Assembly: GCA_977017575.1 (NCBI GenBank)
Contig: CDRNVI010000040.1
Coordinates: 186,001-250,000 of the forward strand
Direction of reading: 5' to 3'
From: Paramoeba atlantica
Taxonomy: Eukaryota > Protista > Discosea
Length of the DNA: 64,000 nucleotides
Part shown: in pieces, positions 16,857-30,594 of the stretch
How the letters are laid out: each line of letters begins with the position of its first letter
Position numbering within the stretch: the stretch's first letter is position 1
The notes under the pieces: model-generated
The model's database searches: none
Told to the model about the DNA's origin: nothing
Seen by the model: only the letters and a program-made list of their open reading frames with translations
Made by a program: the position numbers and the translations under genes

Positions 16857-17423
16857 TCTTTTTTAGGCTCTTCGTTAAACGCGGTGGTTGTTTTCAACTT
16901 AGAAGTCACTCATGCTGTGCGCTTCGCATTGAAAACTACCGCCGCGTTTAACGAAGAGCCTAAAAAAGAAAAATCTCCAAAAGATCATGAATAATCCATT
17001 TTTTTGGGGGAAAAAGCTCGATTTTTCGACAAAAATTGCGAAATTTTACACCATTTTTGGGCCGTTTTGGATGCCTTACCAGTAGGAGAAGGAGTCGAAT
17101 CTGTCGACAAAAACGTCGTAGAATGGTAGCTGAGGTCCAAAACTCTCCAAATACGGTTTAGGAGTCGATTTTGGAAAAATAATATTTTTACTTTTTGGGT
17201 CAAACGTTTTTTTTTTGGTACCCCAAAAATTTCGGAGTTTTTGACCTTGTCGGACCCCTTCCGCGCGTACCAGAGGGGGGTACGCCCAGGTGTGGGGGGG
17301 TGGAAATTCATCGCCGCGGCTTACTCTACCACTTCCCCGCGCTCGATTTCGAAAATCAAGATTTTGAAACGACGTATGCCCCCTGGACCCCCCCTGGACC
17401 CCCCCCCCCCATGGACCCCCCAT
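16857..17423 (+). mobile_element. Hairpin-capped repeat (family H), left part, interrupted by retroelement A
   Basis: 113-bp palindrome 16857-16969 followed by about 450 bp aligning with 54360-54735 and, inverted, with 34750-34975. Confidence 0.7.
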
Positions 17424-17425
17424 CT

Positions 17426-17459
17426 TTAACGATAAAGATACAGTTTCTGTACCTTGTTG
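17426..17459 (+). other. Spliced-leader exon-like sequence (34 nt, first 3 nt absent)
   Basis: TTAACGATAAAGATACAGTTTCTGTACCTTGTTG, identical to 23092-23125; contains the kinetoplastid SL core ACAGTTTCTGTAC; not followed by GT. Confidence 0.8.
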
Positions 17460-19362
17460 AATCCTTTTTCTTTTCTCTACCTCTACTCTTCTCTCCCCCC
17501 GATACATGCCCACGACACGACGTCGACGAGGCTACCGGGGGCGCAAGGATTCACCCGGTGGGCCCGATTCCCCACCTACCTCGACCTCAGGGGGACGCTC
17601 TACCACCCCTCTCAGGCGAGGTTCTAGCCCCCACTTCTCCACCGAGACTGTGGGGCTACACCAGCTCTCTATCGAGGAGCTGAAGAAGGCGAGGCCGGAC
17701 CTTGAAGTCCGTGCAAAGACCCCTTTCAAGTCCCGCGCGTGCGACTTCTGTGGCCTCCCTTTTGTGCCCGCCAGGCGGGATATGTGCTTTTGTGATGCGT
17801 GCATTTCCCTTCGAGCGCAGCACAGAAAAGACCTTCGCGCGCGTGCGAAGACGCAAACCCCCGGGATCCCTCCTCCCCTCTCTGCTTCTTCTCCTAGGTC
17901 CTCTCGACACCGGTCGGTAACCCGAAGACCCCCGCGCTCCATCTCTCCTCGGAGCCGCTCCCGGAACAGCGATGGCCCGCCACCCGGTGAGCGGTCGTTA
18001 TCCCTACCCACAATGGCACAGCAGTTCAAATCCATGGACGCTGTCCGCCTCAAGCTCCTTCCTGCCCGAACCGGCTCAAATCGCTTTTCCGCGGAGACAG
18101 GAAGATGCGCAGTCACCTTATGGCTGGCTGTGACCCTAAGCGCCGAACACGACGTAACATCAATGATGGAGAAAGAGGCCCGTGAACGTCGGGCCCTTAC
18201 ACTCGAAGCCGTTTGGACGCTGCACGACACCCACAAGTCCATCGAGGAGCGTATCTATCTCATTAATGAAGGGTGTCTGGTTGGCTCCGAATGCGGCATC
18301 GCACTCTTCAGCCGCACATTGTTGCCCTCCAGGCGCATCGCATCAAGGTGCACGGGCCGAAACGCCTAAGGGTTGCGTCACGGGCCCTGCTTCGGGAACA
18401 CGCCCCGGAAGCCCTCAGGAACAAGGCCGATCGCTTCTCCTCCTTCATGGCTCTATATGAGGAGTTCTGCACGATGGAGGCCCACCTCCAAAGGGCACAG
18501 GCGAGTGCGATGGCTGGCGACCCACCCTGGCCCCAGCCCACCTTTCGTTCTCCCCCTCTTCCCACACCTTTCCCTGGGATAGCGACGAAGCTAATCCCCT
18601 CGCAGGCTACACCTGCACCGCCAACCAATCCCCAGGTCGACTCTGTTTCAGAACCCTTCAAGATCCTGCTTGATCTTGGGCCGGAGTGAGCCGGATATGC
18701 CACTATCCCCTGCCCCCCGGACTCCTCTTTCCAAGCTTTCCTCGGCACAGTGGGGAACACTTTAGGGGTCCCTGGGGAAAATCTCCTCCTCAAAGACAGT
18801 GCTGGCGAAACCACCCCTATCACAGATCGGGAGGGCCTAGATCGCGCTCAACGAGTAGCGGTCAGCCTGTCCCTACCTCCGTACAACCCCCGTAACAACG
18901 AGGAGGCCGTTATTCGGGTGTACGATGGATCCATGCACGGGTTCATCAACGCCCCCGGACTGCAGGCAGCCCACCACATCCCGGCCGGTCTGAGTGAGAT
19001 TCTCGGTATTCCCCCAGTGCTGACTGGAGCTTGGAAACCTCGTGAATACGAGGAGGGCGTGCTATGGTGTTTCCTCCCTACAGAAACCCTAGTCAGCGAA
19101 ACGGGATGGACCACCCGGGTTGTCAAATGCAATCTACGCAGGGGATGCATCGAGGCAAACCCTGGCCCCAGACACAAGAACCGAGGGTCGCTGGCCTCAT
19201 CCGCGCCCCAGCCCCGGCAGGCACCGAGCGAGACTCCGAGTGCCCTCCTCCAGGAGCCCGACACCTCTTCCCCCAGCAGGGAAGGAACTATCATGGATGG
19301 AATCGCGGCTGTGACTTCTCCGCAACACCCTCCTCTCCATGCATCTTCCTCCCATGCTCCTA
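17426..19362 (+). mobile_element. Retroelement A: 5' part of an SL-headed non-LTR element (decayed, lacks RT)
   Basis: SL, pyrimidine-rich UTR, ATG 17506, CDFC-x11-CDAC finger, frameshift-split C2H2 finger, in-frame TGA at 18687, Ubl-like region, CNLRRGCIEANPGP; colinear protein similarity to 23166-24860; abrupt switch to AT-rich DNA near 19362. Confidence 0.78.
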
Positions 19363-19658
19363 ATAAAAGAATTGATCATTCGACGGAGCTATTACGGTGC
19401 ATTTCAACAAAAGACCAAATTTTTTCTTTCCTTCTGTTATTTTCCTACGGTGTATGATGCATCTCACCGATCATTCAAATTTTGCATGAACGAGAAATAT
19501 AGAAATAGAAATAGAAAAAACGTTCGCAAGGGGGAAAACAAGACCAGCGTTAAGAACTCAAGGAAAAAACCCAAACAAACTTCTTTAGAAATGTACTGTA
19601 GATATCAAATGGGTATAAAAGAGAACCAAGTTTTGATGTAAACGGCGTTACAGGTTAA

Positions 19659-20098
19659 CATGCCAGGGGGGCATGTTATGGTGCTACAGGCATGTTATGG
19701 TGTTACAGGCATGTTAAATTTCTGAACCTCCGTTTGAAAAAATAAGGAAAGCAATCGACACAAAAATTCTACATGAAAAAGGTCGGAGAACTCTACTATC
19801 AGGAGCTCAACACCTTCATCAGCAGCTTCGTCTTCCTCATCATCATCCTCTTCTTCTTCTTCCTGCTTGTCTTCCTCTTCCTCACCCTCCTCCTCTTCTT
19901 CAGAGAATTCTTCTTCACAGGATTCCTCACGAGTATGACCCTGATTCGACAATGAAAAATGAACACATTATAAAAAAAATACAGATTAAAGAAACGAGAG
20001 GAAAATATAGTGTATTAAAAAAAGGCTCGGCTTCGCCGAGAAAATCAGAAGGGGAGGGCATGTTATAAGGGTATGTTACATGCCGGGGGGGGGGCATG
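19659..20098. mobile_element. TTAA-flanked 440-bp MITE-like unit with GGCATGTTA repeats
   Basis: TTAA at 19655 and 20099, palindromic CATGCC..GGCATG ends, five or more GGCATGTTA-like motifs; encloses an acidic low-complexity stretch. Confidence 0.4.
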
Positions 20099-20299
20099 TT
20101 AACGTGATATAGGCATTTTAACCCGTGCTCTCGTTTATAAGAAAATGCTTTACTGAATTCGCACACATCAGAAATGTGTCATAAATATTCATTCAACAAT
20201 CGCATCGATTTGAGAATCCAATCGCTTAATATTGCAGTACACCGCCATCTTTTCCGGAGATATACTGCCTTGTCGACTACTGTACTTATGTGACATTAC

Positions 20300-21070
20300 T
20301 GAATCGCATTACTGGAATCGCAATCAGTGACTATGGGTCGAACCCAAAGGTAGCATCTTACAGCACGATGAACAGCATTGTTCATTGAGGCAAAGTCGCT
20401 TTCGCCCAAAATACCCAAACGCCGATATAGCTCGTCAATCTTTTTGGGCACCATTGAACGCACCATGCTTTTCATGATACATGGGCGGCAGTACCCAGTG
20501 GTGAGGACCTACGTATAGCACCGCTACCATAATGTGTTCCCCGAGAACCTGATCGGTGCCTCCGTCTAAAGCAATTCCAAACAACTCGTAGCTGTCGACC
20601 AGCTCATGAATTTGGCGCCATAATTTCGCTTCCAAGACGGCCATGTCGATTTCCAAAGTACCTACTTCTTTTGGCATGGTCCGCAGAATGTCACCTCTCG
20701 GGCGCATTGTACGGCCATCGTTGTCCAATCTGTTGCGCGAAGTGCAGGGCGACCGATAGAGGAATATTGGTGGATGCAGCGATGGTAGGAAAATCAGTGT
20801 GCCAAAATTCGTATAGTGTCTTCTCCTCCTGCACTAACGCCACAGATTGTTTCGAAATTCCATATGATTTAGGTGGCGGTTGTATGTCAATTCACAAAGA
20901 GAATGAAAAATTTCGGAGCAGCGCTTGCAACGTAGATGAATAAAGTGGTTCATTTGATCCAGCAGAGCAAGATCATCGCACATATTGCGTTTTTCCGATG
21001 AAAGACATGCAATGGCTGCCGTACAAACTTCATCAACGAAATTTTCCTTGATCGAATGAAGTCTGGGCAA
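20300..21070 (-). pseudogene. Degraded hAT-like transposase
   Basis: CKRC..RHLNH BED-like finger, NIPLSV..F..P.R..L region and FGIALDGGTD first-Asp motif, split by a stop and frameshifts. Confidence 0.5.
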
Positions 21071-21604
21071 GGCGGGCCCTCTCCTCTTCCGCTTCGAAGT
21101 TCGACGGGGGGGTCACGAGAGATTTCATCGAGAGAAGTTTGACTTGGAGCCTCTGCCCTACGCTCTGCGAGAGTAGTAGCCGCTTCTCGACGGGCACTAG
21201 CAGTGGCTAAGTTGTAAATAAGAGCAGCAGTATATTGCGAGTGCACAAACACTCGGTGTTTGTGGACCACATTTCGGTAACTTCGGTACGTAAAATTTCT
21301 TTCCTTGCAACAGATTCTTCAATTTCTATTTGAGAAAACAGAACATGCCGACATAAAGCGTTAGCTCGGAGTACGAGTTCAGACATTTGAAGAGAGAGCA
21401 CATGCTTTTCACCATGAGTTTCAACGTACGCCCTCACTCGTTCGTTCCGTCGACAAAGTTCTCGTTGAGATAGTTGACCTGATATTGACAAGTATTGGGT
21501 AACCAAACTGCGCGGCTCGGAATACTTTTCTTTGCCCTTCTTGCGTGGCATAAAACAATAGGACTTTGGTTGATTGTATAAAATTACCGCAGAAACACTT
21601 ATTA

Positions 21605-21982
21605 CTGTACCCCCCCCCTACTTATCTGTCACTACTTTTCGCGAAAAGGTGACAGATAACTAGGGCGGTAGGGGTGTGACAGATAACTAGGCGGATCAGT
21701 GTGCGACAGATAACTAGGGAGGGGGTCTGTCACAAAAAAAAGTCAGAACATGGAATTACAGAAACGGTTTATAATAGCACCACGCACGACTTTTGCTTGA
21801 AATACAAAAAAAAAGAATGTAAGTTTCATTTCATGACCTTTTTTGGAAAAAAGTATTTTACCTATTTTTAAAAAGCGACAGATAACTAGGGGGGGCAGTC
21901 GACCAAAAAAAAATCGAAGTGTCAAAAAGTGACAGATAACTAGGGGGGGTGATGTGTGACAGATAATTAGGGGGGGGTACAG
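21605..21982. mobile_element. TA-flanked MITE (Tc1/mariner-type ends), 378 bp
   Basis: About 28-bp TIR CTGTACCCCCCCC.TA.TTATCTGTCAC, TA on both sides, internal GACAGATAACTAGG repeats. Confidence 0.8.
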
Positions 21983-22884
21983 TAATACAAAACCTAAGTT
22001 TAATACAGAAACAAATAATATATTACTCATTGGATACGCAACCCAGGAACAACGGGGCGCGAAGCGCCGCGAGCTCCGTTTTTACCAGTACTGTTTCTAG
22101 AACTTTCTGGTTTTATATAAATTTGTAGAAAACTAGGAAGCTTCTTCGGTTAGAACTTATAAAGAATTATGAAAGGGGGGGTAATGCTTGTTTCTGTCTT
22201 ACGCTTGTTATGATATTGAATGGCACCAAGTTCGAGAAGCTTCTTTCTTACTTCGTCTACACCGTCTGTCTCCTACTCAGAACTTTCATAGGCTTTGGCG
22301 CGGTACACTTCTCTCAGCAGAACCCTAAACTTTTCGGGGCTAGGAGGAAGCTTCTCGATGAACGCTTTGATCTTAGCTCGGAGCGATGCAGGTTAGGAAT
22401 TCACTTCTCCAGTGAAGCTGTTCCAAACGTTTTTGAGAACCGTGGACATAGTACGTTCCCCCTTACTGTCCAATGGATGTTCAATTTTTGGACAAAGTTG
22501 ATAGATGCGCGCACGTACTTCGTTCCATCATTCGCCCAGGCAATTCTCTTTTTGCACGCCATAATGACGTGGGCAACATGAGAAAATGTTAGTCGAAGGC
22601 CGCAAAGACTACGCCGAAAGAATTGACTTGACAAAGAACGCATCGACCCTTTTGTTCATCTGGAGTCGGGCACCACTGGCAATAAATGCAAAAAGAAGGG
22701 CGGTTCGGACGCGAAATAGTGAACGATGTCGTGGTCTGACACTATCTCAAGCATTGCTTTCGAAGAATGGAGGATTGTATATTTATGAGTAAATACTATT
22801 GGGATTGTTTCTTACTTGTTCTATTTTGTAAGCCTGCGACAGTAATTCAACATTAACCTACTTCCCCCTCCATAAGTAATTATA

Positions 22885-23064
22885 CTGTCCCCCCTCCCCT
22901 TAAGCGCACCCGGCCAGACCCCCCTGTTTAAGCGCACACAGAGTTGAAGAGAAGGGGGCCGGCGGCGCGAAGCGGCGCCAATTTTTTTTTACGTAACGAT
23001 TCAGACCCCCCCGTTTAAGCGCACTTTTCACGGAAAACGAGGTGCGCTTAAACGGGGGGGACAG
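22885..23064. mobile_element. 180-bp TA-flanked MITE
   Basis: TIR CTGTCCCCCC..TTAAGCGCACC, TA duplication, internal CCCC(C/T)GTTTAAGCGCAC repeats. Confidence 0.8.
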
Positions 23065-23088
23065 TAAGTATAAATTATAAGTTTTTTG

Positions 23089-23125
23089 AACTTAACGATA
23101 AAGATACAGTTTCTGTACCTTGTTG
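23089..23125 (+). other. Spliced-leader exon-like sequence (37 nt)
   Basis: AACTTAACGATAAAGATACAGTTTCTGTACCTTGTTG; starts AACT and ends TTG like kinetoplastid SL exons; no GT donor follows. Confidence 0.82.
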
Positions 23126-25020
23126 ATTTATTTCCTCCTTTCCTTCACTACTACTTCTCCCCCCCATGTCAGAACTCCCGCTCAAGGGACTCTTGTTCTG
23201 CGCTTACTGTGGCTCGAAATTCGAACCACTCTCCCCCACCCACCGGTTGTGCCCAGTCTGTTTATCCACAACCGGCACTGCGTCCCGTATCATTTGGGAC
23301 AAACCTAGCACCCTTGGGCCCGTTAACAACGGACTCAGGCAGACATCCACCTCCCGAGAGGCCAGAAGCATCCCCCAGAAGCATCCCCCAGAAGCATCCC
23401 CCAGAAGCTCGTCCTCCCGCGCGAGGTCGAACTCGAGACCGCCCCTTCACCGACAGTCCGAAGGACCTCACACACGCTCGCCATCCAGTGTATCTTTCGC
23501 CCCCAGGAACACTTCTTCACATGACTCCGAGTCATACGCCGACAAGGCCAAATCCCTTTCACCCCCGATTCTTAGGAAAACAAGGTTAGGTACAGATCCC
23601 CCCTCAAACCTCTACACCCCTTGGCAGAGCCCCATCACTCAAGGAACAGCTAGCTCTCATAGGTAAGATGAACCAGGATTTCCTGGGTATCTACATCAAA
23701 CACCAGCGAGACGACGGAGTGCCCTTCGGGTTGAAGAGGGAAGTGACAGCCAACCGGCTGTCATGCGCCGTCCGAGAAATAGAGAGAGAGTACCTGGCGA
23801 CGAGGGATGCCCTCTACACCGAGTGGCTTGACCTCCTCTGTCAGGACGCCCGTCAGGAATACAGACATCGCCAGCTTGTCATAGACAAAGCCCACCTGTG
23901 TCAGACCTGCGGACAGGTTTTTCGGGACCAGCGACGTATGATCGAGCACAAAACCGTCCACGAAGTGGCCGCGGCCCGGGCGATGGTATCCCGTCTCTCA
24001 TCAGAGCACCGCCAGGGAGCTATGATGATTGCGGAACAACAGTGGGCCTCTGCCGCCGACCTCTTCAGCCATCTCTACCAACAACTCCAAAACCTGTACG
24101 CACCCCCCCGGCCCCTCCCCCGACCCCTCCCCCAGCCCCTCCCCCGGCCCCTCCCCCGGCCCCTCCCCCGGCCCCACGGAAACGTACAACTTGGAAGTGG
24201 ACAACCCTCCCCCCCCACCTTGCCGCCAAACCTCCCGCCCTCACAAACACCCCAACCGACGCCCCTAGCGGCCCTTACCCATCACCTCCCCACCAGCAAG
24301 GCGGACACCAACTCTCATCTTCGACGCAACCCTCCGAAGAACCATGGACTAGGGTCAACCTGCACCTCGGACCCCACTTGGCCGGACACATCCAGGTCCC
24401 CGTCCCTGCCAGACACCCCCTACAGAGTTTCGTACAAGCGGTGGGCTTTACCTTGGGGGTCCCCCCCGACCGCATAAGCCTGACCAACGAGCCGGGAGGG
24501 CCATACCTGGTGACCGATGAGGACCTGGAAGAGGCTGAGTGCATTTGGGCCTCTCTGCTCACTCCAAACCACGGCCCCTCCCACGGTCCCCACGTCAAAG
24601 TCTTCGACGGATCGGGAGCAGGAGCAAGCATAGAGACGCCGTCTAATCTCCCAGGCGAACATATCCCCTTTTCCCTATGCCACGCCCTGGGTGTAGCCCA
24701 GTGCTTCGCAGGAGCCTGGACGCCGTTCGTGTCGGAGGGCGGAACGGCTTGCTGGAGCTTCACGCCCACGGAGGGACTGATAGCTGACTCGGGGTGGTCG
24801 GCCGAGTTAGTCCGGTGTAACCTCCGTAGAGGGTGCATCGAAGCCAACCCGGGACCACGCCGCGCAAAACGGAAGAATAAAACGCCCAAATCCTCCGGCC
24901 CCGCGGACAGTAACCCCGTGAACGTAACGGGACAGACGAGCACTCAAACCGAGGACACCCCCACCCCACTACCCGACCCCCACATTACAGACCCCATTCC
25001 CACACCCCCGCATCAGGGGG

Positions 25021-25405
25021 GGGCATGCCGGACGCCAGCGAGGATTGCGCCGAGGCTGGCAGCCTCAGAGCGGGCCCGTATCCAAAATCCCATTGTAATG
25101 GGGGGTCCATCCCGACACACAACAGCCTGTCCTCGGGCCCTAAGTCCACATCCCCTGTTCTGGGGGGGCCATGCCGGACGCCAGCGAGGATTGCGCCGAG
25201 GCTGGCAGCCTCAGAGCGGGCCCGTATCCAAAATCCCATTGTAATGGGGGGCCCACCCCGACACCCAACAGCTTTTCTTCGGGCCCTAAGTCCACATCCC
25301 CTGTTCTGGGGGGGCCATGCCGGACGCCAGCGAGGATTGCGCCGAGGCTGGCAGCCTCAGAGCGGGCCCGTATCCAAAATCCCATTGTAATGGGGGGCCC
25401 ACCCC
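25021..25405 (+). repeat. 146-bp tandem repeat, about 2.6 copies, inside retroelement B
   Basis: ATGCCGGACGCCAGCGAGG recurs at 25025, 25171 and 25317. Confidence 0.95.
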
Positions 25406-25554
25406 GCACTCTCGCGGGACCCTGATCGAGCACATCGCGGCGGCCGCCAATGTGCCCAAAATTTCTCAGCGGACGACGGGAGAGGGGGGGACATCGGAGG
25501 TGGGGGGGTGTCTTCCACCACACGAAGCAAGCAATCCACCCCGACAACCCAGGG

Positions 25555-27694
25555 CATACCTATGTGTTCTATGAACACTTTTTTTTGTTCATTGAACACA
25601 TAGAACGCATTGAACACTTTTTGGGGAGGTACACATCACACGAACATGTCGATTATTATTCATAAAACCTTTTTGTTTTGCGCATATCCAAGTGATTACA
25701 CATGCCCTAGCTATGCAGTATAAGAATGCCGCGGTATGAGGTTCTCTCTTAGTACGCGTGGCAGCTTTTTTTGTACTCGCCGAACGTAATGCATTTCTCA
25801 TTTCAAAATATTTTGCTGTTGTTGTTGCAAAAAACTATTGTTTCCCTCATTTAGTCAAGCATTATCTATTACCCTCAACAATTTCTAATGAGAGGACGAG
25901 GTCCCACAGGAACCTTTCGTGCCCGTCGAAGAAAAATGGGAAGCCACCAATCCAAATACAAAAATAAATCCAGTATCCAATATGACCGACTTAAAGTCGG
26001 TTAAAAAGCTTCACACTTTCACCTTGAAAGCTTTCATCTATGACTTCCAAGTTCAGAGTTTATATTTGTCTGATACGGTACAAACAAACAATATTTTTCC
26101 CATAACCTACAAATAATCCTCAAGGTATTCAAAATTTGCAAAGATACAATTCCATCAATTCTTTCCTTACGTAGACGGTTTCCTATTACCGCCAGTTCTC
26201 GCAACCTTACCTCGAAGCACACTTCGTACCTCAGCTTCGCGCTTGGATGCCGGAATGTCTCGCGCTGGCCCATTTCCAAGGGATTTCATTTTGAGTAAGG
26301 CCTTCAAAGACCATAAAGGCTGTGAATTCTCCTCATTTTCCGAGTTGTCAGTTGTTTTTCTCCTTTTTGGTATCGGAAGCCGATCCACTTTCATGCGAAA
26401 CATAAATAATATACCATCAGCCTCACTTTCATACGAAACACAAGCCTTTATAAAATGATCACAGACGAATCCAATGGCTTGGGCGCTTAAAAATTATTCA
26501 AAAAGTGTGTTCAAAAATTAGTAATTTACGAGTGGATTATATTACGGTTACAGTGTTGTATTTAATTACGGTATTACTTAATTACGCTTTTAAGGTAAGC
26601 GTAATTAAATAATACCGTAATTAAATATAACACTGCAATCCATTTGCACCCCAATCCATTTCCATGGGGAACCACCCTCTCGAATGCGGTATTATTTTCC
26701 GAAATTGAAAAGTTTTTGCAAATTTTAGACCCCCTCCCCAGATGGAAATTTTCACCCCTGTATAAGCCTTTACTTATCCGATGTGTACAAAACGGTCTCG
26801 TTTGCCCCAAAACGTAAATACCGTATCGACAATACGGTATTAAGCTTTGACTCTCGCCTTATGCAGTGTATAAAATCGAACGGCGAAAAAATGACTAAAT
26901 GGTAATTCTTCTCTAAAATATACGTATTCGCTTCTTTTTGTTTCGTTTCTTCACGCGCAAAGTCTTTGTGTTGAGATCTGCAAAATGCTACAAAAATCAG
27001 CTCAAACGGATGCTTGTACGAAAGAAAAAGTGGTGGGTCACTTTTCATTGGGTGGGGTTTATGAACGCTTTCCGTGGTGGAGGGTGTTTATCGTCATGAA
27101 AGGCTCAATACAAAGGCAATGCTCTTCACCTGCGACTTGAAGAATATGATAGCCACGCTAACAAAGCAGCGAAAGACTTGGAGCGCTTTCATGGCCTGCT
27201 TCTGAATAGAAACCTGGGTCCAGATGAAAAAAAGAAAGTACTCGATACACTTGTGGGTGAAAGGGGACTTTTCAAAGAAAAAACCTGAATTTTTTTCCTC
27301 ATCTTCGTTGTCGTCATTTCCACTAAACATTCTTTTTGCACTGTGAACACATTATATGCATTAAAGAAGTTTGTGTGCCGAATTGATTAAACGCCTAACA
27401 CGTGTTAGGACCAACCTAACTGGGGGTTGGGGCCTCTTCGTGGTCCCCCTTGACGCTGGAATCATATCGATGGCACAGACTCGCACCACCTATTCTGCCA
27501 TGTACCTACATGTACGTGAGGATCTAGGTCGTGTAGTACCATCTGGGGCCATTTGAATGAAACAAAGCTTCAAAAAAAAATTGTTTGTACTTCAGGAAAA
27601 AAAATCGAAAAAGTGTTCTATTGGTTCATAAAAGTGTTCATTGAACCATAGAAACACTGAACACACACAAGTGTTCATAGAACACATAGGTATG
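25555..27694. mobile_element. 2140-bp non-autonomous TIR element with CCAGGG target duplication
   Basis: TIR CATACCTATGTGTTCTATGAACACTT; CCAGGG at 25549-25554 and 27695-27700 (2- or 4-bp readings also possible); removal restores an open frame; contains a Tc1 end fragment at about 26840-27062 homologous to 54745-54960. Confidence 0.85.
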
Positions 27695-27700
27695 CCAGGG

Positions 27701-30084
27701 CGCTCCAGTTGAGGAGCGTGGGCAAGCCCCTTCCCCCGAAAACTTAGCACAGCTCCTTGGGAGGGGGTCCTTACGTAAGCTGTACGCACTCCAATACCCG
27801 GCTTGGAAGGAATACACCGCCGGTGTATGCCATGATTTTATTAACAAGTCAGTGGAGGGCAAGGTCGAGATGGCCTGGAACCTCCTCCTCGCCGTTAAAC
27901 GTTTCCTTTTTCTCCCCAAGGACAAGCTGTCGCCACGCCAGCTAGCGCGCGAACTGAGAATGCGTGCCCATCTAGAGGGTTCGGAGACCTTGACTCCATC
28001 CCCGAGTCAGGCCAACGGCCCCCCGTGGTCTGTCAAAAACGGGTCGAGGAATTGTGCAGGGCGGGTTGCTTCTCCAGGGCGGCCAAAACGATGGAGGCGC
28101 CCCTCAATCCTCCGGCCAACCCCACGGCGGCCCTAGAACAGGCTAAGCGTCCACACCCCACAGGCGGGCTCTACACTGCGGGGAAATTCAGGTACAATAG
28201 GGACCGACACGGAACCCTACCCTCCCCAGCCGATGTGGCCAGGAAGGCTCAAAGCCTGGCCCCTATCCGCGCCCCCGGACCTACGGGATGGACCAAGGAA
28301 CTGCTTGTCCCAATCCTCATGGAAGATGGACCCCGCGACTGTATCACGTGGATAATCCACGGGATAATGACTAACTCCCTCCCCCCCTCAATGAGGGAAC
28401 TGCTCACGGGGGCGTCTTTAAAACTATTCACCAAACCGGACTCCCCGGCGGGGCGCCACTCTTCCTACAGGCCCGTCGCCATGGGAGGGTGCATCCTCAA
28501 GGTGGCGGGGCTCCTTGCCCTGGATGAAATCCGGGAACATCTCCCCACTTACTTTCAGGGCATCTAGTTTGGAGCCCAATACACGCAGGGGTGTGAGCAC
28601 ATAATTTATAATGTGCGACAGCACTTCAGGGACAGGCCGAAGGAGGTCATCGTGGCTGCAGACCTCGAGAACGCTTTCAATAGCATCTCACGGTCGGCAA
28701 TTTTTAGGGCGGTAAGGGGGGATCCGAAACTTCTCCCCATTGAGGGCATCACCCTTTTCAGCTACGGTACCACAAGTACCCTTCACCTTGGGGAAGGCCA
28801 ATGCATCACGAGCTCAAGGGGGGTCAAGCAAGGTGACCCCATGGCTCCCATCCTATTTGCCATAGGGATCCAGGGGGCAATCGCCAGAGTGGCGGCCAAC
28901 TTCACAGGTGCGCTGAAGGTCTGGGCGTACCTAGATGACGTCACCTTTGCTGGTGAACCCAAGGTTTGCGCGGAAGCCCTAGAGGCCCTCCGCGAGGAGC
29001 TGAAGCATCTTGGGCTACGGCTAAATACCGCTAAATGCAAAGTAACTACTAGACGCGAGGACCTCTTCTCCGAGTTCTCCGGATCTCGCATGGTCAACTC
29101 CCCCGGGGGGTCAAACTACTGGGGTCAAACTTCGTCGGGGTGTCGGAGGCTAGGGAGGAAGAATGGGTGCTTTCCAAGGCCCCCAAGGTAATCTCCTTCC
29201 TGGGGAAACTCAAGGACATTAGCAGGCAATGCGCCTTGCCCCTCTTAAGACTCTGTGAGAGTCCTCGATGGAACTGCATCGTAAGGACCCACGAGCCCCG
29301 GGTCACTAAAGTGGCCAATACCCAGGTCGACAAAGCTGTCCTGGCATCTGCTGAGGCCTTGCTCGGGGGGATGGGCTCCTTGGGAAAAACGCCGTTCTCC
29401 AATAACCTTTTCACGGCAGATTTCCTGGGGACCATCCCCTTCGAGCACAAGGCGGAAGAAATACAGGCCAAGGCGAAGAACGCCCTACAGGGCCGACCCC
29501 AAGGCATGTCAGCCAAGGAACAGCGGCGCAACCTCTGTGAGGCCGCGTTGGGGAAAGCTCCGACGGCTACCCAACTGGTCTGCATGCGACAGACCCAGAA
29601 CATTCACTCCACTAAGTGGGTGAACGCATGGCCCAACAGGCCGGAGTATTACATGCGGGACCCGCAGTGGGAGACTGCGGCCCGTCTCCGGTACTTGGTC
29701 GCCGGGGGCCCGACATATGCTTCCAGCAGGGACGGAAGACCGCCCAAGTTGATGTCACAGTTGTGAACCCACTGGCCCCGTCCTACGTGGAGAAGGAGGC
29801 CGCAGAGCCTTCTCATACCCTGAGGATGGCCGAAGCGGCGCTCACACGATGAGATGGCGACCGCCTGAGGGAAGGAATTTTACCCCTTGGCCTTCACCAC
29901 GTACGGGATCCCGGACCCAGAGACCTTGAACTTCCTAACCAAGGTGGCCCGGGCCCACACATCCGACAAGAACGGATGCATGTCCCACCTTCTGATGGCC
30001 ATAGGGGTGGCCATCCAGAAAGGTAATGCCCAGATTGTACAGGCGGCAGTACAAGACTGGTACCGCCGCGGGGTACGAGGCTAG
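27701..30084 (+). pseudogene. Reverse transcriptase + restriction-like endonuclease of retroelement B
   Basis: APGPTGWTKELL, YRPVAMG, DLENAFNSISR, GVKQGDPMAP, AYLDDV, GLRLNTAKC, RGPDI..VDVTV, FYPLAFTTYG, QKGNA; TAG at 28565, several frameshifts, CCHC knuckle missing. Confidence 0.92.
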
Positions 30085-30594
30085 CTGGGCGATGGGGTTT
30101 AGGGAGAGGGAAAAAAATGTAATTATAATTATAATTACTTATGGATGTGAAACTGGTGAACCTGGAGGGGAGTAAAAGTTGTTATATTAGATACTTGCCA
30201 TCACAATTTCACAAATAAGCGCTTCAAATAGATAATCGTTCTAATCCTACGTCAGTAAGGTTATCAAGCTCATGAGGCGTGTATGTTCTAGTGATTCTTC
30301 GGAACGTATATTGTTGATCACTTTGCCAAATTGAGTTTCTAGAGCGTCTGTAATTGTTTGACGTAGAACGCATTCGTGCTCAAAAACGAGTTCATTGAAC
30401 TTAAGAGTTTCATCCAGAGCGTGCTCTCAGTCACTTTCACTCATTTCGAAAATGGGGCGAAACCAGAGAACTTTTTTCTCAACCTACCTTTTCGATGGTC
30501 TAACAACAACCGAAGTAAAGTCCACGAGAAAAATGGCCGTTGTGGCTTGCACAAGTTGTCACTGGCTTGCAGTGGCAGTACGCATGAGGTCCAT

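Follow-up and report, generated by a model that had tools for sequence, protein, structure and literature searches.

Two elements with heavily diverged coding sequences open with the same 34 nucleotides in the window (the whole stretch of DNA analysed, 64,000 nucleotides), which raises the question whether this shared head is the spliced leader (SL) of the host and, if so, how an RNA leader became the 5' end of DNA. The 34-mer, TTAACGATAAAGATACAGTTTCTGTACCTTGTTG, is exact at 17426-17459 (element A) and 23092-23125 (element B), both on the + strand, with 0 matches expected from shuffles. The head of A matches the exon of the SL genes at 36/36 positions; the two bases before it are AT, where SL genes have AA. 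The head of B reads G followed by AACTTAACG... and contains the 37-mer quoted by the earlier note, one T short of the 38-nt exon, the missing T falling in a T4-T6 run (AACTT-AACG...). In both elements the head is followed at once by a leader rich in pyrimidines, which ends at an ATG (17506 in A, 23166 in B), without an intervening GT. Contigs from a possible RNA run show similar pyrimidine-rich starts after the SL in host transcripts. DNA of A and B can be aligned over the first 77 nt only (34/34 in the SL, ~65% in the leader), and the proteins share 36-52% identity across ~250 amino acids. The upstream flanks are unrelated, being C-rich 11/17-nt repeats for A and GTGCGCTTAAACGGGGGGG inverted repeats plus T6 for B. 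Because the window contains no SL 3' part other than the two heads, no SL follows the A7 tail of B. We also looked in the flanks for remnants of an SL gene promoter or intron, which the earlier note had named as evidence against its reading; the SL repeat unit matches the window at the exon only, and no such remnants lie beside A or B. The shared 34-mer, the lack of a GT, the unrelated upstream flanks and the missing SL after the tail of B had been noted from the letters of the stretch and are borne out here.

The head is the authentic exon of the host SL. The genome contains ~30-40 SL RNA genes in tandem SL/5S arrays, which read AACTTTAACGATAAAGATACAGTTTCTGTACCTTGTTG/GTATGAGAAGC (the slash marking the junction) in the layout AACTTTAACG...CCTTGTTG/GTATGAGAAGC, with 5S rRNA in the same tandem units; the SL RNA fold has a z-score of -6.9. 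SL promoter-proximal sequence plus exon start occurs at 34 sites, 33 of which are normal genes, and no SL gene interrupted within its exon was seen in the assembly. In the possible RNA run, made from the same strain, contigs show the SL in front of leaders that are unrelated to one another, in line with the identification proposed in the earlier note; none of these contigs covers element A beyond 17471.

A search of the 45.7-Mb genome returned 562 copies of the 34-mer. Once classed, ~40 sites were found to be exon followed by intron, and most of the remaining copies head unrelated sequences of UTR plus ORF, corresponding to ~500 insertions besides A and B. The first 30 SL-headed sites already comprise 17 families, mostly with an ATG 22-52 nt downstream and long ORFs, and the tagged sequences are mainly retrotransposons of several classes, together with SINE-like elements. 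The SL head, which had been ascribed to a single retrotransposon family, is thus not confined to one family; A and B are indeed related, but the trait is genome-wide and extends over several element classes. The 73 matches to the reverse transcriptase (RT)/endonuclease that were listed (66 of 2004 candidates scored) are dispersed, and the proposed search for family members inside SL arrays found none among them. The heads acquire point mutations as other DNA does, and in 5'-truncated relatives the breaks fall inside the SL. At SL position 2, thirty array genes have A, and 26 complete heads have T (13), A (9) or C (4); three heads carry an extra 5' G. This variation, like the extra G, is consistent with the copying of a modified cap.

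Table 1. Positions of the parts of elements A and B in the window.
Feature	Position	Strand	Remark
SL head of element A	17424..17459	+	nt 3-38 of the 38-nt host SL exon
5' leader of A, pyrimidine-rich, to first ATG	17460..17505	+	~65% identical to the B leader
5' coding part of A	17506..19360	+	Cys-rich/zinc-finger-like motifs, 2A-like CNLRRGCIEANPGP, frameshifts
SL head of element B	23088..23125	+	extra G + SL exon minus one T
5' leader of B, pyrimidine-rich	23126..23165	+	
N-terminal coding part of B	23166..25552	+	CxxC...CxxC at start, 2A-like NPGP at 24846
Nested DNA element interrupting B	25553..27696	.	42-nt terminal inverted repeats; foreign to the retrotransposon
C-terminal coding part of B	27697..30084	+	RT + endonuclease remainder
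A7 tail ending B	30110..30116	+	

A and B, both decayed, appear to belong to two related families of R2/CRE-like non-LTR retrotransposons. An uninterrupted relative (L044:1799-5914) matches RVT_1 with an E-value of 5e-20 and ends in CVCG...H...C followed by GPDICFQ...VDVTV, a CCHC motif and a PD-(D/E)xK motif (PD...D.T.V); the order in the single long ORF is RT, CCHC, restriction-like endonuclease. The best PDB matches are R2 proteins (9nl3, 9dou and 9nl2; E-values of 3e-8 to 6e-8), ahead of LINE-1 ORF2p. Zinc-finger-like motifs (CxxC, C2H2-like), an A-tail and internal repeats are present as in the CRE clade. A word-based protein search returned no trypanosomatid proteins among the matches to the RT/endonuclease region, and Rfam at the gathering threshold gave no match in the whole window.

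The earlier note had placed two elements across 17426-30117; both are there, but A is only a 5' fragment and B is interrupted by a nested element. Element A (17424-19360) comprises the 5' 1.9 kb of a family related to B, with the NPGP of its 2A-like motif at 19158. Its sequence stops at 19360, before any RT region within the window, and 19361-23087 is other repeat DNA outside the element. A family A copy on another contig (L045 on C26) continues into the region conserved with B. The 5' ends of this family differ in how much of the head they keep: the window copy has the full head, the C26 copy the last 16 nt after an A-run, and another copy GTTG alone. Element B, at 23088-30116, is an R2/CRE-like retrotransposon that is no longer intact; it has an RT and, at the C-terminus, a restriction-like endonuclease. 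It contains 2.7 copies of a 146-bp tandem repeat (25016-25406), which is present in more copies in other B elements, and is split by the nested 2.1-kb element, whose arms (25553-25594 and 27655-27696) are 90% alike. Its RT block (28001-29125) is kept, and the CCHC motif is lost to a ~200-bp deletion at 29703, which leaves the endonuclease remainder (GPDICFQ...VDVTV, 29703-30081) and a stop at ~30082. Relatives have their tail at the same point, A21 in L044 and AGGG-type repeats in another. Contig C39 carries a second copy of the block holding A and B, 98% identical, so the heads there and in the window are not independent copies; two B copies that are independent both sit in ATAATT-type repeats. 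A and B are oriented as the flanking + strand genes, which encode a kinesin and an acyltransferase.

Kinetoplastid genes are transcribed in long promoter-less units, and every mRNA receives its 5' end by trans-splicing; a leader encoded in DNA therefore marks sequence derived from RNA. We consider it probable, at roughly 0.7, that A and B are cDNA copies of trans-spliced RNAs. An element in sense orientation within a polycistronic unit would be read through by RNA polymerase II, and the 5' end of its RNA would be formed by ordinary SL trans-splicing. The RNA that is reverse-transcribed would then already bear the leader at its capped 5' end, and this mature mRNA would be turned into DNA by target-primed reverse transcription, the probable mode of integration, at A/T-rich sites away from SL genes. 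The true SL exon, the lack of an intron and of SL-unit remnants, and the 5' truncations inside the SL all agree with the dispersed retrocopies of an SL-bearing RNA that the earlier note had envisaged, and on this sequence evidence the heads most probably mark copies of leader-bearing capped RNA and not insertions into leader genes.

Two further lines of evidence show that trans-splicing does feed retroposition in this genome. A tandem tyrosine-recombinase element has its SL fused to ACTTTTCTT... at precisely the point where its unspliced duplicate reads ...TTAGACAG, which ends in an AG acceptor. Stacked heads, in which the SL is followed by an SL relic, number 30 genome-wide (~5% of heads); 16 of them, from at least eight different families, have relics starting after the SL-internal AG at nt 21-22 (AG22), thereby keeping 16 nt of the SL, and two after AG16. 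By our own arithmetic, the chance of 8 of 11 relics falling at one of 13 positions is ~2e-7. Some relics (TACCTTGTTG, CTTGTTG) are not preceded by AG. A head-bearing copy lacks an AG where SL meets UTR, and its re-splicing should leave relics; clean heads far outnumber relic heads, and A and B each have a single head without a stacked relic. No copy of A, of B or of the 14-copy L017 subfamily was found in which a polypyrimidine-AG acceptor occupies the site of the SL head. The proposal that the SL is re-acquired from the host each cycle accordingly stands in part: relic stacks show that re-acquisition occurs, but "each cycle" goes beyond them, given that most heads are clean, that the search for a source copy with an acceptor found none and that heads mutate like other DNA.

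The two routes that the earlier note had offered, trans-splicing and read-through from an SL promoter, each have support elsewhere in the genome, the former in the acceptor and relics, the latter in a single fusion. Each active family might have a source copy under an SL promoter, making capped SL-UTR-ORF RNA from SL nucleotide 1 with no need of trans-splicing; A, B and the other dispersed copies would be its progeny and their SL inherited, not re-acquired. We regard this as unlikely, although it would account for the dominance of clean heads and parallels the residence of CRE/SLACS/CZAR elements in SL genes (PMC12278014). At C41:279915-280877, a 924-nt stretch of SL-unit spacer that equals a unit on C3 at 100% identity precedes a full exon, which joins AATTATTTTCTTTATTTCATCTTTTCCAGG, the leader of the L017 family, with 0 mismatches; the element side was read for 30 nt. 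The 14 copies of the L017 subfamily share an identical 37-nt leader and are all SL-headed at the same junction (14/14, 0 headless). This fusion is the sole one among the 34 promoter-proximal sites, set against at least 17 head-bearing families, and none was found for A or B; its scarcity is weak evidence either way, because SL arrays may be under-assembled. It could also be a secondary product of the 38-nt homology, through which an SL gene and an SL-headed cDNA became linked, and the tyrosine-recombinase acceptor and AG22 relics point to trans-splicing. It is with considerable doubt that we suggest that some R2/CRE-like lineages took over a complete SL RNA gene promoter together with the exon and use them as a transcription unit of their own; for A and B, trans-splicing and not an SL-promoter source copy probably supplied the leader.

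R2-type RTs are known for template jumping, which lends something to an improbable third possibility, that RT copying a read-through transcript jumps within the 38-nt SL homology to the abundant SL RNA or another SL-mRNA and runs to its cap; every cycle would then yield a fresh clean head, and the SL would play the part that the R repeat has in retroviruses. Clean heads would then prevail even though head-bearing copies have no AG at the junction of SL and UTR, and both the relics not starting after AG and the duplications of partial SL plus SL at the complex 5' ends of L007, L010, L023 and L067 would fit. It explains neither the strong AG22 preference of the relics nor the tyrosine-recombinase acceptor, and it becomes superfluous if source copies with acceptors or promoters exist. 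Least credible of all is that the heads are remnants of SL genes hit site-specifically in the manner of CRE/SLACS/CZAR, with flanks dispersed later. The elements are of the restriction-like endonuclease/CRE type, and CRE-clade elements do target SL genes (PMC12278014); yet the SL is complete and borders the element leader at its 5' side alone, A and B are flanked by neither a promoter nor an intron nor another SL half, the upstream flanks are unrelated and no exon-interrupted SL gene was seen in the assembly. Insertion at a fixed SL-gene position is contradicted for A and B by the missing SL-gene remnants.

A and B also differ from the systems that resemble them most. The CRE clade (SLACS, CZAR, CRE1 and CRE2), whose members insert at a single fixed site within SL RNA genes, shares with the A and B families one long ORF that encodes RT and, C-terminally, a restriction-like endonuclease, as well as zinc-finger-like motifs, internal tandem repeats and an A-rich tail (PMC12278014), and also a kinetoplastid host and an association with the SL. 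In contrast, A and B lie outside SL genes, beside unrelated DNA, and their own first 36-38 nt are the SL exon. The R2 superfamily is similar in its RT and in the domain order RT, CCHC, PD-(D/E)xK, and R2 likewise depends on host read-through transcription for its RNA. R2, however, resides in 28S rDNA and forms its 5' end by a self-cleaving ribozyme, whereas A and B have flanks that are not rDNA, no Rfam match and the host SL as 5' end, and their targets are A/T-rich runs. The closest analogue appears to be the SL-relic retrogenes of dinoflagellates ("mRNA recycling"; Slamovits and Keeling 2008, as reviewed in PMC6050394). Here as there, a DNA-encoded SL without its intron heads retroposed sequences, and stacked truncated relics with a boundary at an AG inside the SL record repeated rounds. 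The present case differs in that it concerns Euglenozoa, with a 38-nt SL and the internal AG at nt 21-22, and in that the tagged sequences are mainly retrotransposons themselves, of several classes, plus SINE-like elements. In the literature searched, we found no description of SL-headed retrocopies in kinetoplastids.

Since trans-splicing is universal, an SL on a retrocopy is to be expected; the surprise lies in the scale and the details of the SL-headed insertions. With the leader as a tag, one can count retroposition events and put them in sequence, as for dinoflagellates but in a small and tractable genome, with relic stacks as a record of successive rounds, and cap-adjacent changes may report on cap-4-type modification. 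The fusion on C41 is a concrete candidate for an element-owned promoter and a link to the SL-gene-specific CRE/SLACS elements. If promoter capture did occur, it would provide capped, translation-ready RNA from SL nucleotide 1 without trans-splicing and make the leader a heritable, self-renewing 5' module; such an element-owned Pol II promoter would stand out in a genome otherwise nearly devoid of gene promoters and could bridge to the SL-gene-resident CRE/SLACS elements of trypanosomatids. The elements illustrate how mobile DNA comes by a cap and a fixed 5' end in promoter-poor genomes.

Elements A and B, the two spliced leader (SL)-headed elements of the window, share an identical 34-mer, TTAACGATAAAGATACAGTTTCTGTACCTTGTTG, for which shuffled sequence gave zero matches. 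In agreement with the earlier note, no GT donor is present at either head, the DNA-encoded SL at the 5' end of the element; the SL instead joins a pyrimidine-rich leader directly and the ATG follows. The upstream flanks are unrelated, since C-rich 11/17-nt repeats precede A whereas B is preceded by inverted repeats of GTGCGCTTAAACGGGGGGG and by T6, and no SL follows the A7 tail of B, since there is no further SL 3' part anywhere in the window.

Coordinates of the SL-headed elements and related features (plain numbers, window; C, contigs; L, extracted genomic loci)
Feature	Coordinates	Details
Block with A and B	17423-30117	12.7 kb
Recurrence of the block	C39:637415-649694 (-)	98% identity, elements in same order
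Element A	17424-19360	5' 1.9 kb alone
34-mer of A	17426-17459	+ strand
ATG of A	17506	
2A-like motif of A	19158-19169	in frame
Other repeat DNA	19361-23087	no RT of A
Element B	23088-30116	
34-mer of B	23092-23125	+ strand
ATG of B	23166	
2A-like motif of B	24846-24857	in frame
Tandem repeat in B	25016-25406	146-bp unit
Nested element in B	25553-27696	2.1 kb, 42-nt terminal inverted repeats (TACCTATGTGTTCTATGAACAC...)
Deletion in B	29703	~200 bp, CCHC motif lost
A7 tail		3' end of B
Uninterrupted B relative	L044:1799-5914	1371 aa, with RVT_1
SINE-like copy	L032:1440-1700	example of L031-L042
Solitary SL exon and intron start	C6:27023-27125	
Solitary SL exon and intron start	C83:132963-133065	
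Solitary SL exon and intron start	C87:74326-74426	
Solitary SL exon and intron start	C87:106884-106984	
Tyrosine-recombinase-type array	C1:9752-25063	spacing 5093 bp
SL-headed tandem units	C22:137424-155729	~2.28 kb, head-to-tail
SL-headed tandem units	C21:255-9432	~2.28 kb, head-to-tail
SL-unit spacer and exon fusion	C41:279915-280877 (to 280914 with the L017-type leader)	924 nt of spacer, then full exon
Orphan SL intron start	C25:199046-199087 (-)	AAAATT where exon expected

That the heads are the host SL is confirmed by SL gene arrays, by their fold and by SL-bearing contigs from a possible RNA run. Throughout the 45.7-Mb genome (248 contigs, the window being C40:186001-250000), the 3' end of the exon is followed by GTATGAGAAGC, a kinetoplastid-type intron start, at ~40 sites, 32 of which hold the full exon, with 30 reading AACTTTAACG... 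The genes form tandem arrays on six contigs (C97, C107, C11, C74, C3 and C24), and their repeat unit carries a 5S rRNA gene on the opposite strand. Exon and intron fold far better than shuffles (z = -6.9); Rfam detected only 5S rRNA at the SL gene locus, matching no SL RNA family there, and nothing in the window at the gathering threshold. Contigs of the possible RNA run, from the same strain, match the neighbouring kinesin gene at 100%, and several high-depth ones carry the SL followed by unrelated pyrimidine-rich leaders. Relative to the 38-nt host exon, the head of B is one T short in the T4-T6 run and starts with an additional G, and the match of A begins at nt 3.

A genome search for the head, sorted into SL genes and element heads as the earlier note had proposed, found the 34-mer 562 times (≤2 mismatches), ~40 of them in genes. 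The first 30 head sites lead into 17 unrelated downstream families; in most, a long ORF is present and an ATG lies 22-52 nt past the SL, and an A-run precedes about one-third. Graded 5' ends, heads on unrelated families and the lack of SL-gene flanks together support A and B as retrocopies of SL-bearing RNA. The grading is seen within family A, which has the full head in the window, an A-run and then no more than the final 16 nt in its relative on C26, and only GTTG in a copy inside another RT gene; this last copy had been considered as an SL-less subfamily (A2), which was rejected. At SL position 2, where all 30 array genes have A, the 26 complete heads from L001-L030 and L058-L077 divide into 13 with T, nine with A and four with C, and three heads carry an extra 5' G. 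Together with the T lost in B, such cap-proximal variants may have arisen by miscopying of modified nucleotides in the cap, and would then be a trace of its modification.

Other SL-derived sequences accompany these heads. An abundant dispersed SINE-like family (L031-L042) starts at SL nt ~11-13, so that it has only SL nt ~11-38, and continues with GTACATTTT... and a GC-rich hairpin; many hits for the SL 3' end plus GT come from this family. Unspliced SL RNA also seems to have been retrocopied, judging from four solitary, promoter-less copies of the exon (from nt 3-5) that continue into the intron for 67 nt. On C22 and C21, head-to-tail units each start with the SL, and their leader is 3 mismatches away from that of the L017 family, another SL-headed family.

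Insertion of A and B into SL genes was rejected, since the exon is the only part of the 1454-bp SL unit with a match in the window; the SL gene promoter or intron remnants that the earlier note had named as counter-evidence are absent from the flanks. Matches to the B-type RT/endonuclease (73 listed, with 66 of 2004 candidates scored) are dispersed, with none at SL-array coordinates. A and B share the orientation of the flanking + strand genes, with an acyltransferase and a kinesin upstream and further + strand ORFs downstream. The recurrence of the whole block on C39 represents a haplotig or a segmental duplication; many other matches also come in contig pairs (C12/C2, C26/C59, C60/C51), a pattern suggestive of haplotigs in the assembly.

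Element A belongs to a family related to B, and its C26 relative continues into a region conserved with B. As DNA, A and B align over the first 77 nt only, the SL being identical (34/34) and the leader ~65% identical; as protein, they share 36-52% identity across ~250 aa, and the RT/endonuclease of the two lineages, found elsewhere in the genome, is 73-77% identical. A 2A-like CNLRRGCIEANPGP is conserved in both, although the surrounding protein is only ~40-50% identical.

Element B is an R2/CRE-like non-LTR retrotransposon. Its uninterrupted relative has R2 proteins as best solved-structure matches, and its C-terminus reads CVCG...H...C and then GPDICFQ...VDVTV, a restriction-like endonuclease. 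The window copy is broken by the nested element, the deletion and frameshifts; copies of the nested element occur on many contigs. The only homologues retrieved for the RT/endonuclease region were unnamed metagenomic proteins and two metamonad proteins, with no CRE/SLACS reference among them, a protein atlas search contributed generic RVT_1 clusters only, and Pfam gave next to nothing for N-terminal ORFs, whether from A and B or from ten further families with heads. A second, independent B copy on C74 has an internally deleted head; ATAATT-type repeats surround both this copy and window B, so these elements may prefer a particular target of their own.

The earlier note had derived the heads either from trans-splicing or from read-through from an SL promoter. 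Signs of both were found in other families, whereas the search for either type of source copy of A or B gave none. In a tandem tyrosine-recombinase-type element (L001-L004, L029), the SL lies between two copies of a 34-nt segment; the first copy is preceded by ...TTAGACAG and the second adjoins the SL directly, so that the SL junction coincides with a genomic AG acceptor. At 30 heads, a second SL 3' part follows the SL within 12 nt. This relic, a truncated older SL, is exactly TTTCTGTACCTTGTTG, starting after the exon-internal AG22, in 16 of the 30 stacks, and starts after AG16 in two. The nine AG22 cases that we read represent at least eight different families, two with triple stacks; by our arithmetic, eight of 11 family-level relic boundaries would coincide at a single position, out of 13 detectable, with a chance probability of ~2e-7. 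Read from these boundaries, the stacks show DNA-encoded heads that would have entered read-through transcripts, to be respliced and retroposed once more, a recycling signature of the dinoflagellate type (PMC6050394). Non-AG relics are present too (TACCTTGTTG, CTTGTTG), which points to a contribution from RT slippage or template jumping. The claim that the SL is re-acquired in each cycle is possible: the AG22 relics show rounds of re-splicing, but clean SL-leader junctions predominate, in head-bearing copies without AG at that junction, and heads gather point mutations like other DNA (L044, L069, L073) and are thus not conserved copy by copy. Headless A or B copies, in which an AG acceptor would stand where the SL is, were not found within 3 mismatches of 29 nt, nor was a source copy behind the clean junctions identified.

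Read-through would require a promoter-driven source copy, and the fusion on C41 could be one. Among 34 sites with SL promoter-proximal sequence and the exon start, 33 are ordinary genes and C41 is the sole intron-less exception; its spacer, which has a break at unit position 492 and extends over the 5S region, shows 100% identity with the C3 unit, and its exon is joined without mismatch to the first 30 nt of an L017-family leader. The L017 subfamily comprises 14 copies whose 37-nt leaders are identical, and every one of them adjoins an SL head at the same point. The SL arrays of C3 and C11 yielded no L017-family sequence. On C25, AAAATT precedes an orphan SL intron start, which may mark the 3' side of an insertion placed where exon and intron meet. 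C41 could just as well have formed secondarily, when the cDNA of an SL-headed RNA joined an SL gene via the shared 38 nt, and no SL-promoter fusion was found for A or B.

The literature searched contained no report of SL-headed retrotransposons in kinetoplastids, which does not prove their absence, nor the exact SL string, and a 2026 preprint on free-living kinetoplastids does not mention retroelements. A/B-type elements share the architecture listed for the CRE clade (PMC12278014) but lack its defining site specificity, and the principle of SL tagging is already known from dinoflagellate retrogenes. New here are a census of SL genes and promoters, the fusion on C41, counts of cap-proximal variants and statistics on relic boundaries. 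The initial observation is real and its interpretation essentially right: the template of A/B-type copies is an SL-bearing RNA.
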